This document shows positions 1,900 to 64,000 of a DNA stretch of 64,000 bases, one piece after another (position 1 is the stretch's first letter; the number at the start of each line of letters is the position of its first letter). The notes under the pieces are model-generated. The model did not search any database. It was not told where the DNA came from and worked only from the letters and a program-made list of their open reading frames with translations. Source of the DNA: Fimbriosthenelais zetlandica (Eukaryota); assembly GCA_977030845.1 (NCBI GenBank), contig OZ365114.1, forward strand, positions 18,724,001-18,788,000, written 5' to 3'. A program made the position numbers and the translations under genes.

Positions 1900-4800
1900 A
1901 CGTTGTCAAGTAAATTGTATAGGAAAAATAAACTGTCCCTGTTGGAAGGAAACCCAGAGGGATATGTTATGTAAAAAAGAACCGACTACAGTCGTAATCG
2001 TCCACTCCCGTGAGGACCTGAGGTGATAAGAGTGTCCTCTGCATCCCCTTGATTGTCGTTAAAAGGAGAGAAAATTGTCGTTGTAGTAAGAGTTTCAGTA
2101 AAAAAAATTCCATGGTTTTATAATAGTTTTCTATTGGGTTTAATCAACCAATAGACATAATAATATTGTTTATTCCAAGACGGCCTAGTCTGCCAAGATG
2201 GAGTAAAGTCCCCATTATTTTATTTGTTCCTTTGTAATATTCGGATAGTAAGTTGCGAGCAGCTTCCCTGCCAATGCTCTGCAAAACTTGTGCATAGGAA
2301 CTTGGAGATTGAGTAAAAGCTTCTTCATATTCAACAGTCAAAGACCTAGGGACGGTGGGTAATTTTTCCCACATCTTTATTCATGAATGTCTTTGCCTCG
2401 TTTGGGAAGAAATGAGGAAAAGGGCCTTCTTCGACAACCATGCAGAGGTATTGTAGAAGAGAATGCCTTTTTGTTTACAAAGGTCTTTGTCTTAGACACA
2501 TACGGCAGAGGAGTTTATCCAAACACTGGCAAGGCTTGCATGGGCAAGCAGCTATGAAATAGAACACTTGGTGAATCTCAAGTGGGAGAAAGCAATATAT
2601 CTGCATTAAATTGGGTACAGGACTCCGAGGTCTAATAAGTGTTGTGTTGATACATATATATTTGCTCCAAAAAAGGCCAAAACAATGAATAGCCTCTCTC
2701 ATGTTAGAATTTAGGAAAGACCTACAGCTGTACACTTCAGACTTTGTCTTTGGATAGCCGCTGATATTTAGGCGGTTCTTCTTTTATTTTTTTTTAATTA
2801 TCATGTAGAGCAACGAGAATAAAGACTCACCCTTCAACTATAATATAATGAATTACCACTGTCTGTCTGTAATACTGTATGCTTCTAAGTTTCTTAATTG
2901 AATACGCAAAATATGAAGCAAGTCAGGGTAGAGTTCTTTATGCTTGAAAGCAGGTCATTTGTGCCCCAGCAGACCAAATGCCGAAGGAGGGCCTTATAAT
3001 TGTGATCTTTACCATCTGCTCTTTATAATACCAAAGCCAAAGCTTGGAAATTGCCATCTGCTTGCTCATTAATTGTGGCCCAATTCCCATGCATGTCATA
3101 TATTGTGTGTTATGGAGACCACTGGTGTATGCTGAAGTATGGTTTATAGCTCTCAGTGGGACCAAGTCCAGCATTTGTCTGCGCCTGCCTGTTTAGTCTG
3201 TGCAATGGACCACATGCAAAGGATAAAGTTAGTGTTTTCCTCATACACTCCAATGGAACATGATCCTGACACAGGGTAAATACAGTGATATTGTACGACC
3301 AATAACCGGGATCAATGCCTGTCTAAGCGCACCAGGAGCAGGTCTGTGAGCAGGTACCATAAGCTCCTAATATAGACGGCTTTGCCTGCTGGGGTATCCC
3401 ATATTGGCTTTGCTGGATAACAGTATAAGGCATCTTTTTTGCTGAATGAAAAGGAGCTTTGTGGTCGATTAATTTGACTGAAAACAAAATGAGGTCCAAG
3501 TGAGATTTATTAAATGATAAGGAAGTCTATACTGTATAGACAGAGTGTAAGATGGATCTTTAGAGATAGTTATCATGACAGAGCTCCAGCAGTTCAGGAA
3601 ACAGTCATGGGGAGTCTGGTCACTGAGGATTCTCGATAGATGAGATACATCCCCCTCCCTCGACTTGAAAAAAAGATGGAATAACCAGCTCTCAGTATAT
3701 ATTACATATCACACGGAATGAAACCGTAATAGGTCGAAAGAGTGTCACATGAAGGAAATAGTATTCTCTATGATAATTGAAAACTTAGATGAGCTGCAAT
3801 AATAATGATAATAGCAATGATACTGTTCTGTCGCCCATTATGTTTTATCAGGAGCTTCCTGAACAATGTTGTCAAGCTAAATTGTTTTTATAGTACATAT
3901 GTAAGGATTCTTGTTCGTGAATTACCGGCCAAATTTCCGTCATATAGATATGCTCTCCACATTCCCGGAAGCTCAGATATAGGGGGAGACGTAAGTAATT
4001 AATGTACGACCAATATACATGGTTCATATGCTACAGTACGGTTACTATTGTAACCATTATACATTGCTTCTAATCCTAGTCCCCCATTGTATGCTTCCCA
4101 GCCTCCAATCCCAGTACTGATATACAGTTAGCGCCAGGCAATAGATATTTTTTATCTTCCTCTGATGCAGTTTTAGTCGTTTTATTGCATTATACATCAA
4201 TAGCGTAAATGCAAGTGTCTGTATAGATGCCTCATACATTATGCCAGGCGTGATACAAATAAACTGTCATAGTTGTTTAAATAGCAGCCTTTCCCATCAC
4301 CCTAAGCAGACTTTTAATGCTGTTATAACACTGTTGGGCTATTCTTTTACCGGTGATAGATTTGTACGCAGGGGGCCTTTATACATGGTGAATTCATGGG
4401 GACTGGCATGGTGAGCTATGTTGTCATTTTGTATGATGGCAGGTTGATTGTTTGCTTTTAGTGATAGCGAGACCAGCATTCCCTATTGTTAGTGTGTTTC
4501 GATCTGTTCTGTACACAATGAAATGAACATGAGGAAACTATGGGCACTCTGGATAATTCCACACTCTGTCCTTTTCAAATTGACATAAGCCTGTTGCATG
4601 CATTGTGCCAATAACCAAGAATTTAGCGATATAATGCTCGTGTTTAAATTCGGAAATGTTTGTACCAGACTCTCTTTATCCTTGCTCTATAACGATTATG
4701 GTGGAGGACATGATATTATCATACACCTTGAATCTCCCTGTAGTGTTGAAATCCTGAAACTCAACAATTTCCAGCCGGTTTTATAGCAATAAACCATCCG

Positions 4801-44500: not shown

Positions 44501-47500
44501 TCCAGCATGAAGTGATGTGGAATCACCTCTATATCATAGTCAGATCCCAATGACTCATCTGAAATACAATTTCACATCAGTATATTTTGCGTCTTATAAC
44601 ATCTCTAGTTTCATGAAAAGTGTGAAGTTTTCTGGCTAAGATTTCTCTTACCTGCTTCCAAGACAGCATTGAGTGAGTATTCTCGGCAGGGAATCCATGA
44701 TTTGCTTATAATGGGTTGGAATCGGGCTACTTCACCATGAATATTATAATGCATGTCATATAGAGTCTTGTCACCCCCTCTGCTGTCACTACATCTACGA
44801 TATGAGAATGGAATGGGGTTCGTTCTGGGGAAGTATATTCCCAATGTGTCCCCTTCTGCCACCCTGAAAATTAAAAAGATACACATGAATTATAGGCCTA
44901 ATGGACTTTAGGTATATGTTGTGGCTTCAGATAAGATTCCTGATACTAATTGCTGAAGATAATTACCTTATCCTCTCATGCCCCTCCAGAGCTTTTACGT
45001 ATTTCCCTCGGTCGTTGTAAGCAATTCTAGTCTGTCCTACAAGGATGTATGTTGAACCTACAGCTGAATCCTTCCTCCAAACCTAATTATCAGGTCACAA
45101 AAACGAAATCATCAATATAGGCCAATCTTCTAGCATAGCGACATCTCTTATTGCATGCGTGTTTTGCTCAGTGCTCTCATAGGGCTCAGTGCTGTAATAG
45201 GGCTCTTCAACTATGCACAATTAAGATGTCGATGGGTATAATTAATATTTCTGTCTTCTTAGACCTATAATGAAGACTATTATACATAAACTATGGAACA
45301 GGCCTACCTGTAAGTAAATAGGTTCATGTGATGAACCATGCACCCGTGGGTTTGAGTAGAAGCTCCATCGTACTATATGGCCATGTTGAGAAATTGTTTT
45401 ATAGGGATTTGGTATGACTGACACATTCATCCATCGGTCGGTATACTTTCTTGAGACAATTTCATCGCCAACATCTATGTGCTCTTCCAAGAAAAAAGGT
45501 GCATAATTCAGTGATATGATTATGAATGTTGTCTGCGATGCACATTATGTTATCCAAAACTTTAGGTTAAAAAATGTGGGCTGTTATATATGAATCTTTC
45601 CGATATTAGTTTCACAAGAAAATAGTACAGTCTCAGAAGAGAATGACATTGAAAGAGACAGAAAATCTACATCTTTGTACCTATATGCCTGTGACCTGGT
45701 GGACTAACAGCATAGGCAGCTTGTGTGTGGATGATATGGTCTATACTTCCAGTGTCCAAAACTCCTCTATTTGCCAGCACCTACAACAATTCAGTTAGTT
45801 AGGTTAACACAGTCATACCACCATTATTATCATCTATCACCATTATCATCATCTAGATATAAAGTCTCATTGGTAAGACCCTACATGCTTACTTGATAGT
45901 GGAATCTAATGTTGCCGCCGTCACGAGGTGGCATGATGACTGTGGTGTTGATGGTAAGAGAGTTGATACAGGTACCCAGGTGATGCTGGGACTCCATCTG
46001 GACGTAACTGTTGGAAGGGGAATACCAAGCATGAACAGTGAACTCCACGGCTTCTGTTGACTTCAGCAGCATCCGTTTAGTATAGCGGGTGGAACCTTGT
46101 GCCTGTAAATATAATAACAAGATGTTCATGACAGTAACTCCCAAACCAAACGAATGTAAAGAACATCAATGTAATCAAGTACTTCATATGTTACATGAGT
46201 GATGATATCCACTAAGTTAAACAAAATGCCCTATCAAAGATGATTTATGCAAAGCCTTGCATTCCCATAGCAGCTCCATATAAATCATTGCACACGTTGT
46301 GAACAGTCTGCAATAGATGGCAATGTAGTTACCGACCAGTTTATGATAGCAATATATGCTGGCTGACAGTCAAGATACCTCTTGATATCCCTGTATGTCA
46401 GCTTGGATCTTGAAGCGATCCATGGACTTGCTGAGTTGCCCCGACAGAGGGGATCAGGGGATGTAGTACTTCCCAGATGGGAGACACTCATTTGTCTTCA
46501 GGGGCGTAGTGTCCTTTTCGGGCAACATTCCCCCTTGCACCATGGAAGTTTATTTCTTGTAAATCTCTGACCGACAAGATAGTTTGAAATGTCAACCCTT
46601 ACCAATTGTTTTTGCTGCACATCCTATTATTTGTACAAGAAATGGCACTGTGTGATTCAACATAACATAGCCATGCTCATTTGAAAAGCCTCAGTATGCC
46701 TGAGGCTTTCCACCAGTGATGTTTTTCAAGTACCCAATGTTTCAAGGGCCCTTTGAGTGTGGTAAGTGCCCCCACACCTCCTTGGAACTCCCATGTTTGT
46801 GAGCACAGTCATGGGTCTAGGATTTCCCTTACAGATGCCCGGGGGACAGCGAGTCTTAAGAGAGGACTAGGGAATCACCTAGTTCCTGGCAGAGACCCAG
46901 CTATAATGAATGCAGAAGCATGACAGATGCCACTCCCCATATTCCTTCCTGGGCAGCAAGGGAATTCATATATGCCCAAAATGGACCCCAGGACCATGAA
47001 TTAACAATAGTATGCGTGATAGAAATGGGGAATAAAACAGATTATGTCTTATATGTAAAGAAGGGCATCATTCTATGATGCAGTAAGGAGGCCAGAGGGA
47101 AAAAGGTGTCAAGAGTTACCCCTCTAAAATTATTTTATATGGTGTATGCTCTATACCCAGCTTTGTCATTACCATGCTTCCATATAGAAAAGGACTTCAT
47201 AAATTCCAACGATGAATAGCTCAGTTCATGTAAATTCGATATTTATCGCCAAACACGAACAAATTGGTGCCATAAACTGCGATCAATTTGGCAAAGCATA
47301 CATCTTTCCCACTTATACCTGCATATATTTTGAGATATAATATATTCATGAATGATAAACTTTTTATTCTAGTTCAGAAGGAAGAATTGGATGGATATTA
47401 TTCCCATTATTCACTGCGTTCTCAGTAAGCTAACCCTTTGTTAGGAGGACTGTCCCGTGATTAGGGTTGTTCATTCACAACTTGAGTGTGCCGACGTATG

Positions 47501-58549: not shown

Positions 58550-60450
58550 CCCTGGCAAACACCATGTCTGCTTTTAATCATAGATCTATGAGAGGCTGTT
58601 TCCTATTAATCAATCAAGTATATGGGGAGGCTTGGTCGTGAGGAGAGTGTCACCAACCAACACCTGGGGCAGATCAATGTGGGCGGGTGGCCAGTGAAAC
58701 GGAGAACAAGACGGAGCAAATTACTGATCTCTGTATAATATCCACCTGAGCCCCCATCTTTCTTGATTACAAAGTCGATATTTACGTCCCTAAAGGACTT
58801 TTGAAGTAATTCCCTTTCACACGTCTAGATTTAGTGTATGATGCTGTATCCTCCCTCTCTTAAACTCACAGCTATTGCTTCATACAGTGTTTGCCCTGAA
58901 GGCAACCAACCCAGAACAGGTATTAGTTACCATTATGTAAAGTTGTCATTAGCTTAGTTCAACAGTAGCTTCCTTCTTAAATAAACTACTAAAGTAGGGG
59001 ACTTGTCATGTTGAAACTCCTAGCTGAACATTATTGAGTTTCTTCTTTCACTGAGAACACAAAAGCTCTCACATCAACAAGTGTCGCGAAGCAAGGTATA
59101 CAGTATTTTTCTACTTGCTCCCTTTTACTTATTTTTGTATCAGTGTTCAATTGAAACACGTTTCCCCTCGTCTTTTGTCCAGAGAGGTAGAGAGGCACCT
59201 TTGATATTGTGGTTAGGAAAGGTTCCGTTGGATGAAAGTATAACACAGAACAGGATCCCAAGAAATGCATGCAGACATGTTTTTGGACAGAGCAATTGAG
59301 GGAAATCCTAGAAAAGTTGAACATTTGTGGCGGAAGTCTAAGCACAGAAACCCAAGCTGAGATCTATAGCTGTGAGGCTTTCAAATCTTTAGATATTTGT
59401 CAATTGGGATTGACATAGTAGCGTCAGTCATGCAAAGGCGAGGGAAGTCTGGTGGATCTGGAATAAGAGGATAACGTTTTTCAACACATAGGACAGACAG
59501 AAAAAGCATGGCCGAGTCATTAGCAGTAGACTCAGTAGCTGAGGGGAAAAAGCTGCATCTTAAGAAACTGATCACAAGGATTCTGTTAGTGTGTTTTTGT
59601 TGGATGTAATTGCATGGGAGGTGTACAAGAACGTTTGCTGTATGAAAAAGATGTGACTGTCAGTAGTTTAATACTGAATGCAGAAAGAGATTTTTCCAAA
59701 GCAGCTAATTATATTTCGGTGAAGGAAAATGTAAGAAGGTGAGACTGTCTAGTGCGGGCAGACTGTTTAAAAGCCATTTTTGACCTGGACATAGGGCCTA
59801 CATATCGTATAGCTTGTTTTGGGCTTGTGTTCACCCTGAAAACTTACTGAAAACAGGTTAATTTCCTGCCAAGTCCAATGCAATCCATCTTACTATGAAT
59901 TCTTACCCTGGTAGCAAGAAAATGTCTGGACCAAAGTTCTTTCAAATTAATGTGGTCAGATATATCATCTTAAATTGAAGGAAACTTTTGTGATCAAGAG
60001 GGATTGGTCCATTCTGTGCTTTTGATCACATGCCTCATCAACAGGCGCCCAATTGGTCAGTAGAAGGCGCATGATTAGAGACGGTGTATTGGGTGTGATC
60101 AATCATCTCTCTTCTATGGTTTTGTGTGGAGCTAGTCTGCCCACTCCGTCTATCAACAGTCTGGAACAAAAGGCTAGAGACGAACTCGAGTCTTCCACTT
60201 TTTTAATACGGATCATAGAAGCATCAGGCTCTTCCATCATTTAAGCAGGGTTAAAATATGATCTGCAGCATCAATATGGTGTCCTTTGCTCAGTATAGTC
60301 TTTTGGTAGGCTCTCATGTCCCAAATAATCCATGCGACTTGTGAAGGGAATCTGATCTGCGTGGGAATTCAATACAGGGATAGTGTGTGGGGTATGCTTT
60401 TTATTGGACCCGTTATTGATTTGGCCGGTTCCTATTTCCTTCTTTTCTGC
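58550..60450 (-). mobile_element. LINE 5' part (ORF1 plus start of APE), upstream of the first identified A2M exon
   Basis: SRLLIDGVG (about 60150), YPLIPDPP (about 59470), YEAIAVSL (about 58870), KDGGSGGYY (about 58750). Confidence 0.45.
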
Positions 60451-60999
60451 AGGCTTGTTGTGAGCCTGATCATTTTGGGTGGTCGCTGATACAGACTTTG
60501 TTATCCTTTAATTCCCCAGTGTTTGATGTCTGCATTTGTCTGTAAAAATGCTCTTTTTGTTCCTTGCAGCATTCTGAATTAGTACTGTGACATTCTGGAA
60601 AGGCACACATGTATAGAAAAGATACAGAGATATATATATATGAGGCTCAAACAGTAAACTAATATCGGCAGCCGACGGATGAGATGTCATCCACATAATA
60701 TTAAACTTTAGACCTATAAATTCCTTTCATTGCTTATTCATGCAGGATATAGGTAATTGCGCACACAATATAAACTAGTCTGCCATGTAATCATTACTTT
60801 ATTTCTGTCAATACCTTTTAGAACCATTGAACATTAGCTAATAATCATTCAACAACGGTAGGGCTACATTCAGGCTGAATTCTTCGAGTTACCTCTCAGA
60901 CAGCTCATGTATCATTTCATATTAGTTCCCCTCCCCAAAATATTACAAAAAAAGTTCTTGTCATTCTAGAGACCAAACATTAGGTGGTCAGCTTCATTC

Positions 61000-62300
61000 T
61001 GATTCTTTAGGGTCATTGAATTGATGTGTCCTTTAGAACATGTGGCTATCAACTGGCACATATCGATATCTGAGTTTACGCTGGCCTTGAGGAGCCTGAG
61101 ACAAGCCCACCCATCCCATTCCATCCTTGTTTACGTGACTAAACAACGTCACAACTCCATTCGTCCGTCTGATTCGGCTACTTTTACCTCGGTGACAGAA
61201 ATAATCGATGTCTGGGAAAGCCGCAAGGGATCAATAGAGGTGGAAGTCGCCATTGACGGTCAGCCGCATTAGCCGGAAGGACACGGGACAGACCACTGGT
61301 GGCTCTGACTGTTAGGGGGAAATGGAGGTCGATTATTAGTTCAATCTAACGTTGGTGAGAGTGGTGGAGCAGTGGAGAGGAGGAGGGCTCCAGTTAGAAT
61401 GGATACCTAAGAAGGTTATGACACATATTGATGGACCGAAACTCTGAATATCAAGGGGAAGTCCATGTTTCTTGTCAGGATCCATAATGGAGCCAACAGG
61501 CTCCATATCACATGCAGTTGGCTGAGTTTGAGTTTGGGAACTCATTTTTCTCCAGTAGAGTCATTGCCTTTTCCACCACAACAATTTCTAGTCGTTTTCC
61601 CTTTTAATATAATTGTGTATAATCACGAAAAGTCCCTATCTTTGGTTGTCAAACCTGGAACAGATTTGGGCTGAACCTCAGGGCAACAATGATAATGGCG
61701 AACTGACCCCCATAATACATTGCCTCAGAAAGTGCCCTCAGAAAGTGGTGGGTCTGGTAGTCTGCGACTATAGGATAATCTGCATGCCTGCATCTCACTA
61801 TTGCCATGGAAACAACATGAAGACACTTCAGGTTGCCAGAGTTTCTTTACTCGAATGCCAGTGAATGGCAAAAGCTGTTTTTCTTCCCCATAAACCCTGA
61901 CAATGGGGCCTTTTTATGGCTTCTATCGGTCCTCTGGCAACTCCATCAGCCTGATTTCTTGGCTATGTTGTGCCTGAATGGACACTAAACTTTGCTGCCA
62001 TCCTGATATAGAACAGATCTGACAGCAAACAATTAATGAGTGAGGCGGGATTTATGAGGCATATTTAGGATCATAAAGCATCTTAACCAACCATTCATTT
62101 TTTAATCAATACAACAATTAATTTTTGTGGGGGTTCTGGAACTTTGGGCACTGCTATTTATTGGCCTCTTGGGATCTTATCAACGGGGAATCCCATGACA
62201 AAGCGTGATGGATAGTGAAGCCACCTACTCTGGTCTCGTTAAACTCTCCCAACTTTCTGCCTCATTCGCCTGGAGAACACACCCATTCATATTCGTGTAA
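61000..62300 (-). mobile_element. I/Nimb-like ORF1 (gag-like) remnant
   Basis: DSPLI (about 62185), ADGVARGP (about 61940), degenerate zinc knuckle SCCFHGNSEMQAC (about 61800). Confidence 0.4.
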
Positions 62301-64000
62301 TTAAAACCAAATCAAACCCATGACCTTATCAAGCTTCGTGAATTCAGATCTAATAAATCACACTGTTATCATGTTCATTTATCTGAGCTGTTCGCCATTT
62401 CTTTCGATATCCCACATTTTCGTGATGATAGGAGAAAAGCGAATGGTAAAATCAATCTTTTTTCACGGTATACTACACTTCTGGAATATCAGTTGAGATA
62501 TTTGCAATTTGATAAGCAAAATCTCACGCAAATCCATTTGATATATCAATGTCATATATCATATCCTTCATCAATATTATTTTGAAGACGTCACCCACCT
62601 ATTCTTACCAAGCACGAACCAATTGCAACAGCCACTTGTATTTAACAAAAAAATAAGTTGTACATGATGAAACATTCAAAACGCACGATGATTTCTAATA
62701 TTTCATGTATTTAATGTGGATTGTATGTCATGGTGGATAGCCCTTCAAGCAAGGCAACAAAACACATATTTACCGGCGGTTATATGTCATAGAAATCATG
62801 ATTATACAGTATAGTGCACAGGCTCCCAATGTACATTAATTCCACTGGAATATATTGAGGCTGGGGACGAAAGCCGTGCTGTACATGGAATTATAGGGAG
62901 TTGAGAACTACACCAATATCATTAAAAATGTTGATTGCAATCCACACCAATGGCTACCCAACATTGACAGGAGATCGATCACATAGGCCAAAGCAGCTGA
63001 TTAAAAATATAATTGGGTGTCTATTAAGTAATGTTTCATCCAGTCAACTGCCTTTTACTGCTCATTACGGCAATGTTAGTCTCATATCTCAGTTGCAACA
63101 ATGCAACCCTCTCTGCGTGTGAAGAACCACATCAGTAGTTGGGCTTTTTGATTTCAGCTGGCTGTTGAAATCTTATCTTGGGTGACGTTTTTCTCATTTA
63201 ATACCCATATTGCTCCTCCACAATTCAGTTTCTTACTTACAAAAAAAACCTTTAGTGAACAGTTCAAATACTGCAGTGCAATATATTATCGTGTCTCTCT
63301 GTATTGATTTTGTTCAATGGAAATTAACACGCAGTAGTGACCTCACATAAAACATTGAAATAAGCGCAAGAAAAGTTCCTTGAACAGATGTGGGATATAT
63401 TATGTTCTTTTCTGCTAATTCTTGGCACTATATAATATTGGACGAAGGCTGCACACGGGGAGGTTAGCATAATACAGACTTCCTGTCTTGCTCGGCTATA
63501 TATATAGCGATGCAGCAATGAATAGTCTGTATATATATGAAAGATGAAATGGTGTCTGACCACAGCTTTCTCAGCTCACTGTATTATATTTGTCCAATTA
63601 TTTTCTTCGATCTTCAAAGCAAAACACCATGCTTGTTCAATCAGCGCATCTACCTCGCGATAACAGACAAATTGATCTCCATCCTCTACGCCTGCTAGTC
63701 ATAACACCCTTGTAGAGACAGAACTCATTTTTCCTTCTGCTAATTATGAACTCAACATCCTGTCCTTATTAAAGGCCTTCCTCGTCTAGAGTCCACCATA
63801 GCAAGTTGGGAATAAGAGTCACGATTGAAAGCATCCTTGAGTATTTCCCTCCCAAGTCTTCCTAATTACTCAGATCGACTCATGTCTGCTCGGCTTAGAA
63901 CTCCGGTAAAAGGACTTTAAGAGCGTTTTTTAGTCAGCTTCTGAATTAATTTGAATCTGGAGTGATATGGGATTATTCTTCGTTTTTATATTTTGAATCT

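Follow-up and report, generated by a model that had tools for sequence, protein, structure and literature searches.

Thioester proteins such as A2M, C3, the thioester-containing proteins (TEPs), CD109 and MCR are usually regarded as a very conserved scaffold, with accessory domains located at one site in the sixth macroglobulin (MG) domain, MG6, and at the C-terminus. In A2M, it is the loop connecting the fourth strand of MG6 to the fifth that carries the bait region (PMC13069473), and in MCR an LDLa domain takes the place of the anaphylatoxin (ANA) domain or the bait region (PMC7016707), all three of these elements being positioned inside MG6 (PMC13069473, PMC7016707). The accessory features of the superfamily mentioned in the literature searched comprise the ANA, C345C and LDLa domains, the bait region, transmembrane segments and glycosylphosphatidylinositol anchors (PMC7016707, PMC12939704), and an insertion in MG5 of a thioester protein is not described there. 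This article deals with a stretch of 64,000 nucleotides from Fimbriosthenelais zetlandica (assembly GCA_977030845.1, contig OZ365114.1, positions 18,724,001 to 18,788,000 of the forward strand), referred to as the window, in which an A2M-type gene on the minus strand contains three additional exons within the part corresponding to MG5, together matching one complete domain of a separate family. A preliminary description of the window had characterized this block as a foreign domain inserted in MG5, had stated that the known accessory domains of the superfamily are located at other positions, and had named an earlier description of the same insertion as an outcome that would refute it; in the publications searched, the internal accessory domains belong to MG6 and no insertion in MG5 is mentioned.

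The three exons, designated 13, 14 and 15 in the numbering of the preliminary description, which is retained here for exons 11 to 17, are located on the minus strand at 45483-45308, 45082-44967 and 44863-44652. Read on the reverse strand, their 176, 116 and 212 nt add up to 504 nt, or 168 codons, free of stops and frameshifts, with the sizes and coordinates given previously. In the local exon table, whose borders were fixed by unique strings, exon 13 begins in phase 1 and ends in phase 0 after the residues ...IYLQ, exon 14, for which AG|GTTTGG...ATAAG|gtaatt provides a consistent pair of borders, ends in phase 2 (...RIR|VAEGD), and exon 15 again ends in phase 1. The block is accordingly bounded by phase-1 introns on both outer sides and has phase-0 and phase-2 introns inside, in keeping with the earlier designation of a symmetric 1-1 module. 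Every intron between exons 11 and 17 has GT-AG ends, the lengths in this order being 112, 197, 225, 103, 93 and 221 nt, and the outer splice sites of exons 13 and 15 are good. Spliced together, exons 11 to 17 form an open frame of 385 amino acids, and the frame also remains open when exons 13 to 15 are left out. The window contains no N and has a G+C content of about 40%. Short tandem duplications of two copies each, which are probably trivial, occur in the introns before exon 12 (45816-45853, 19 nt) and after exon 13 (45166-45201, 18 nt).

The membership of the surrounding gene in the A2M/TEP superfamily is indicated by both its Pfam MG-domain and A2M regions and its GCGEQ thioester motif, which is intact near 37.7 kb. 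Single exons of this gene match A2M_BRD (E values of 3.5e-6 and 0.013), A2M (6e-19) and, weakly, MG2 (0.04), and there are two matches to TED_complement (2.1e-13 and 1e-15), the first of which belongs to the open stretch at 37835-37497 on the minus strand that holds the thioester exon (HPTGCGEQNL). When the piece covering MG4 to MG6 was compared with the Protein Data Bank (PDB) by phmmer, it matched human A2M, A2ML1, another A2M and CD109, and the best solved relatives of the MG5-MG6 piece are A2M, A2ML1 and CD109.

The same comparison locates the insertion site. The upstream flank aligns with residues 439-512 of human A2M (6tav), ending ...YYLIMAKGGIVRTGTHG, and is composed of two exons on the minus strand: exon 11 (46102-45893, 210 nt), which covers the end of MG4 and the first MG5 strands (human residues 439-~490), and exon 12 (45780-45681, 100 nt), which includes the MG5 strands up to the insertion site (VLANRGVLDTGSIDHIIHTQAAYAVSPPGHRHI), has ...IMAKGGIVRTGTHG as its aligned counterpart in the human protein, and leaves in phase 1. 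The downstream flank aligns with human residues 520-610, starting MKGHFSISIPV, and comprises, on the same strand, exon 16 (44558-44380, 179 nt, entry phase 1; human residues 520-~563), which encodes the remainder of MG5 (..HHFMLDV..HLLLYYVTDGGEVVSDVIRLDTSPCY), and exon 17 (44158-43997, 162 nt), where MG6 starts and the alignment reaches residue 610. In the A2M_BRD profile, exon 16 corresponds to positions 58-99 and exon 17 to positions 99-140, the latter with an E value of 3.5e-6. The two flanks are only 7 residues apart in human A2M and are separated here by 31 linker residues plus the block of 168 codons; the block therefore occupies a 7-residue loop of human MG5, which, by the usual seven-strand MG topology, would be the loop between the fourth and fifth strands. 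The flank alignment, the Pfam matches and the GCGEQ motif thus bear out the proposed position, a loop of MG5 within a thioester gene of the A2M type.

The end of exon 12 had been placed at ...VLDTG in the preliminary description, and this shorter version is possible in view of a second phase-1 donor within the exon (GAA|GTATAG at 45745-45747, last exon base 45747), located 66 nt upstream of the donor at 45681. The use of this site would remove 22 codons (SIDHIIHTQAAYAVSPPGHRHI) and would still permit a correct junction with exon 13 or exon 16. The donor after base 45681 is preferred because the alternative would delete HIIHTQ, the counterpart of the human strand LLVKQ, and exon 12 most likely runs to ...GHRHI.

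Compared with the described accessory elements, the insert shares with the bait region, the ANA domain of C3/C4/C5 and the LDLa domain of MCR the general arrangement of a foreign module spliced into a loop of an MG domain, and it appears to lie in the MG5 loop that matches the MG6 loop carrying the bait region. The host domain differs, being MG5 instead of MG6, and so does the type of module, as a predicted jelly roll of about 160 amino acids contrasts with an extended bait region, a helical ANA domain and a small Cys-rich LDLa domain. Moreover, the gene in the window retains its own MG6 region besides the insert in MG5.

The insert is matched over its full length by a separate domain family and is regarded as an autonomous module, in line with the foreign domain postulated earlier. 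When 1.84 billion representative proteins were searched exhaustively with HMMER, 165 proteins with the domain were identified at E <= 1e-3, 29 of these at E <= 1e-10, and the best showed 35-36% identity to the insert; as the matches span query positions 4-165, the block represents one whole domain. A family hidden Markov model (HMM) was derived from an alignment of 54 domain copies, and in the version built without the insert, the latter scores 139 bits (E 5.6e-45) over HMM positions 4-158 of 160. The envelope of this match covers residues 105-272 of the translation of exons 11 to 17, in which the three exons themselves account for residues 104-271, and the domain borders consequently coincide with exon borders. 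Along the family profile, exon 13 corresponds to positions 3-53, exon 14 to positions 53-90 (VWRKD...HERIR) and exon 15 to positions 89-158 (VAEGDTLGIYFP...PCREYSLNAVLEA).

The consensus of the 54 copies reads G....R...D....IP.P...G....W..Y...V.LQVWRP...Y.LVGQT...I.V..GD..G.YFP..NPIP...C...LY...W.PCR.YS. Two of its positions are invariant and nine nearly invariant, and all eleven residues are retained in the insert (R11, D15, G34, R61, G101, D102, G105, C156, R157, Y159 and S160 in insert numbering). A pair of Cys is characteristic of the family and is also present in the insert, where both lie in exon 15, and the insert is likely to be a domain of about 160 amino acids with one disulfide. No Pfam family matches the insert at E values up to 10, and no relevant Pfam family, including PF18560, is found in the 54 aligned members. 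A scan of metagenome contigs with the insert found no relative, and the 54-copy alignment produced nothing new in a word-indexed search.

Members of the family occur alone, in many proteins of 150-250 amino acids, in tandem, with three copies in P0001 and five in P0003 (Glandiceps), or in mosaics, where two to four copies stand C-terminal in Astacin-ApeC-CUB-Kringle-Sushi-Lectin_C-ShK proteins of Haliotis and Babylonia. Signal peptides are found on P0001, P0003 and P0004. All named members, from Glandiceps talaboti, Capitella teleta, Haliotis spp. and Babylonia areolata, are annotated as 'uncharacterized' or 'hypothetical', and Atlas clusters with like features are labelled Porifera and Annelida. 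Representative members (Glandiceps talaboti XP_077999396 and XP_077985727, Capitella ELT88399 and the Haliotis/Babylonia mosaics) share 24-38% identity with the insert over the whole domain, together with the motifs R..D, LQVWR, GD..G.YF, NPIP and PCR.YS and the Cys pair; unlike the gene in the window, these members are not thioester proteins, and their internal intron positions differ from those of the window. The recurrence of the motif pattern in uncharacterised secreted proteins of marine invertebrates, which the preliminary description had suggested, is thereby documented, and as judged from these sequences the family is a real, mobile, extracellular module absent from Pfam. Among the mosaic proteins, P0007, P0019, P0036 and P0087, from Babylonia, Haliotis and one Logan assembly, are large and conserved, and each is annotated 'uncharacterized'.

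Regarding the fold, the AlphaFold2 model of the insert, calculated from the 54-copy alignment, has a predicted local distance difference test (pLDDT) value of 92.8 and a predicted template modelling (pTM) score of 0.89, and consists of 13 strands with no long helix, which agrees with the compact, beta-rich domain with two Cys anticipated in the preliminary description. In a comparison by VIA-align, which is independent of Foldseek, the best structural match is the lectin-like domain of Clostridioides difficile Cwp84 (PDB 4ci7 residues 334-496; Pfam PF18560, Lectin_like), with a Z score of 11.7 over 142 residues and a root-mean-square deviation of 2.7 A, followed by the Bxb1 tail-tip protein (Z 11.1) and a cyanophage A4 protein (Z 10.9). 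Z scores of 5.4-9.8 are obtained for the PBCV-1 capsid protein, the N-terminal CBM-like domains of two esterases, PHR domains, F-lectins and many carbohydrate-binding modules (CBMs), including CBM32. In Foldseek, the highest-ranking PDB entries, with template modelling (TM) scores of 0.47-0.56, include two phage structures, namely a capsid protein of a cyanophage and a fibre of a mycobacteriophage, together with the Cwp84 lectin-like domain. Among the clusters of the AlphaFold database, E values as low as 6e-9 are obtained, the matched domains being parts of mosaic proteins without a name; the Swiss-Prot models include no convincing fold match to the insert, and a profile search of the PDB with the insert gave chance-level matches only. 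On the basis of the AlphaFold model and the structure searches, the module is classed as a galactose-binding-domain-like jelly roll, and its family lacks a solved or characterised member.

The likeness to the Cwp84 domain extends to its setting, since both are accessory beta-sandwiches on extracellular proteins involved in proteolysis, and clusters of PF18560 also appear among the neighbours of the insert in the Atlas feature search. With an identity of 7% and no match of the insert to the PF18560 profile, this likeness is at the level of the fold only. The general sandwich is likewise shared with F-type lectins, CBM32/35/62, discoidin, PHR and phage tail or capsid decoration domains (Z 5.4-11, Foldseek TM scores 0.44-0.56), and many of these jelly rolls bind carbohydrates or surfaces; Z scores of about 6 for lectins and CBMs fall in the range that the tool calls common, and no shared sequence motifs were detected between them and the insert.

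Other genes of the family provide information on how the module reached its present position. In the Glandiceps talaboti gene for P0003 (L001:3001-25588, OZ203286.1), each of the five copies is encoded by three exons with phase-1 introns on both sides, and 1-1 linker exons, coding for 10-11 amino acids, lie between them. The sequence of the signal-peptide exon is present twice on L001, at 1195-1281 and 3001-3087, and the nearly identical third exons of copies 2 and 3 point to a recent internal duplication. On a metagenome-derived contig (L004:2511-3011; GCA_013332915.1, JAAUYA010243962.1), the domain is an apparent single exon of 501 nt with a strong acceptor (tttgctttcag) and the donor CAG|gtaatt, both of phase 1 as read from the sequence alone. 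This exon, which follows an open frame coding for SRCR at a distance of about 400 nt, looks like a typical 1-1 exon of a mosaic gene. In Haliotis and Babylonia, each copy comprises two exons, and the border is of phase 1 at the N-terminal end beside a non-family module and of phase 0 between tandem copies.

As the positions of the internal introns differ among the four lineages, the outer borders are the feature held in common, as expected for an old mobile module. The phase-1 borders in Glandiceps and on L004 support exon shuffling, so that the earlier view of the block as an exon-shuffling unit is strengthened by the recurrence of 1-1 borders in the former and, apparently, on the latter. The insert itself is a class 1-1 module, with domain and exon borders in register, and its phases and borders make placement by exon shuffling into a pre-existing phase-1 intron the most likely route. 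Recent transposition of the block was considered as a candidate origin and rejected, as neither flanking direct or inverted repeats nor transposon traces were found around it. Within the 64-kb window, one A2M-type gene and one copy of the inserted domain are present, with no second copy of the domain and no tandem A2M paralogue. At 1-29500 and 59700-64000, no obvious conserved coding exon was observed among the listed open stretches of at least 85 amino acids on both strands, and the A2M-type gene appears to be the sole clear gene of the window.

Taken together, these observations can be accommodated in a model in which the three exons would be coding exons of the A2M-type thioester gene and would specify one complete, unnamed extracellular jelly-roll module, most likely brought by exon shuffling into a phase-1 intron that already split the loop between strands 4 and 5 of MG5. 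The mature protein would then be a normal thioester protein, with MG ring, thioester domain (TED) and receptor-binding domain (RBD), bearing an extra globular domain that projects from MG5. By analogy with lectin-like and carbohydrate-binding jelly rolls, this domain would most likely be an arm that binds a glycan or a partner protein, and such an arm would localise or orient the thioester protein, providing either built-in target recognition for covalent tagging or the tethering of a protease trap. A true in-frame insertion is the most economical explanation because the three exons are intact, the conserved residues are kept, the phases fit, the spacing is tight and the domain borders equal the exon borders. 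The inclusion of exons 13 to 15 in the mRNA is deduced from these features of the sequence, and the proposed function from the fold and from the companion domains of the family in other proteins (ApeC, C-type lectin, SRCR, Sushi and CUB). As a whole, this model, from coding exons through a shuffled jelly roll to a binding arm on MG5, is regarded as probable, with moderate confidence.

Several points weigh against it. RNA runs were searched with the locus and with exon 15 alone, and none was listed in either case. A query of 202 amino acids extending over both junctions found three distant relatives of the domain only, and no near-identical protein fragment; an insert-free MG4-MG6 query likewise found no protein fragment on record, and an exact look-up of the open reading frame around exon 15 returned nothing. 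Orthologue support in the form of thioester proteins carrying the domain appears to be lacking, in that no thioester motif or TEP occurs among the best 150 of the 165 representative matches, a comparison in which full-length A2M orthologues were not directly sought. The donor gene cannot be named because the internal intron positions differ from those of Glandiceps and the molluscs. Furthermore, Foldseek gave nothing against the PDB at E < 1e-3, and the identity of 7-12% between the insert and the nearest solved folds says nothing on the ligand. The prey chamber of human A2M is bordered by MG1-MG5 (PMC9181621), and the insert could therefore point inward, not outward. Finally, since skipping of the block keeps the frame, an alternative cassette or unused exons are conceivable.

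The main rival is a cassette: exons 13 to 15 would be alternatively spliced, giving a plain A2M and a domain-bearing A2M according to isoform, tissue or condition. The symmetry of the block is what such an arrangement calls for, skipping leaving an open frame that joins ...GHRHI-D-ESLGSDY, and weak splice signals are found at two places, namely the exon 14 acceptor with its poor pyrimidine tract (tgacctgataattag) and the exon 12 donor (TAG|gtacaa). Nothing is directly contrary to a cassette; however, the introns next to the block share the short length of the neighbouring constitutive ones, exons 13 and 15 have good outer splice sites, and this possibility is judged to be rather unlikely. Less likely still is an unused relic, in which a gene fragment of the domain family landed in the intron and is either unspliced or spliced as noise. 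The empty RNA and protein searches and the absence of an orthologous thioester protein with the domain among the best 150 matches are in line with such a relic, but no stop or frameshift interrupts the 504 nt of the three exons, each of the eleven invariant or nearly invariant residues of the family persists, the splice sites are canonical in all six cases, the two outer phases agree with the host frame, and the flanks lack the repeats or transposon traces of a recent landing; a relic is thus considered improbable.

The lowest probability is assigned to a separate gene on the same strand, nested in an A2M intron and coding for a small secreted single-domain protein. Many family members do stand alone at 150-250 amino acids, and because reading through the exon 15 donor reaches a stop after 16 codons (GKRNLSQKTSHFS*), exon 15 is conceivable as a terminal exon. 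However, no exon that starts with ATG, resembles a signal peptide and has a compatible frame is present in the 197 nt preceding exon 13, the open stretch running into exon 13 contains no Met, the gaps to the A2M exons measure only 197 and 93 nt, and both outer phases match the host gene. The preliminary description had named a nested gene as an outcome that would overturn its interpretation; with no Met or signal exon upstream of exon 13 and with phases that fit the host, such a gene is very improbable, and a true in-frame insertion into MG5 remains the favoured explanation.

In complement, recognition and thioester deposition are divided between separate lectins and C3. The gene in the window may offer a different solution, in which target recognition by a lectin-like pattern-recognition domain in MG5 would be combined in one polypeptide with the covalent deposition of the thioester protein or with the trapping of proteases at a surface; this possibility is put forward as a tentative and rather doubtful one. 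The 'pattern-recognition A2M' proposed in the preliminary description is a reasonable hypothesis and not a result, and the binding of glycans or microbes is to be read in the same way, because its basis is the fold likeness to jelly rolls of the lectin-like and CBM types.

The presence in MG5 of a folded module about 160 amino acids long would represent a new position and a new partner fold for thioester proteins, and would show that MG loops other than that of MG6 accept insertions. If the proposed function is true, the protein would be a case from nature in which one chain unites recognition with covalent capture, and the inserted domain would be the founder of a new family of binding modules that is widespread in invertebrates. 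This family is sizeable, is not in Pfam, and extends over sponge-like, annelid, mollusc and hemichordate proteins, often beside ApeC, C-type lectin, SRCR and Sushi domains; naming and characterising it would aid the annotation of many invertebrate proteins that are at present labelled 'uncharacterized'.

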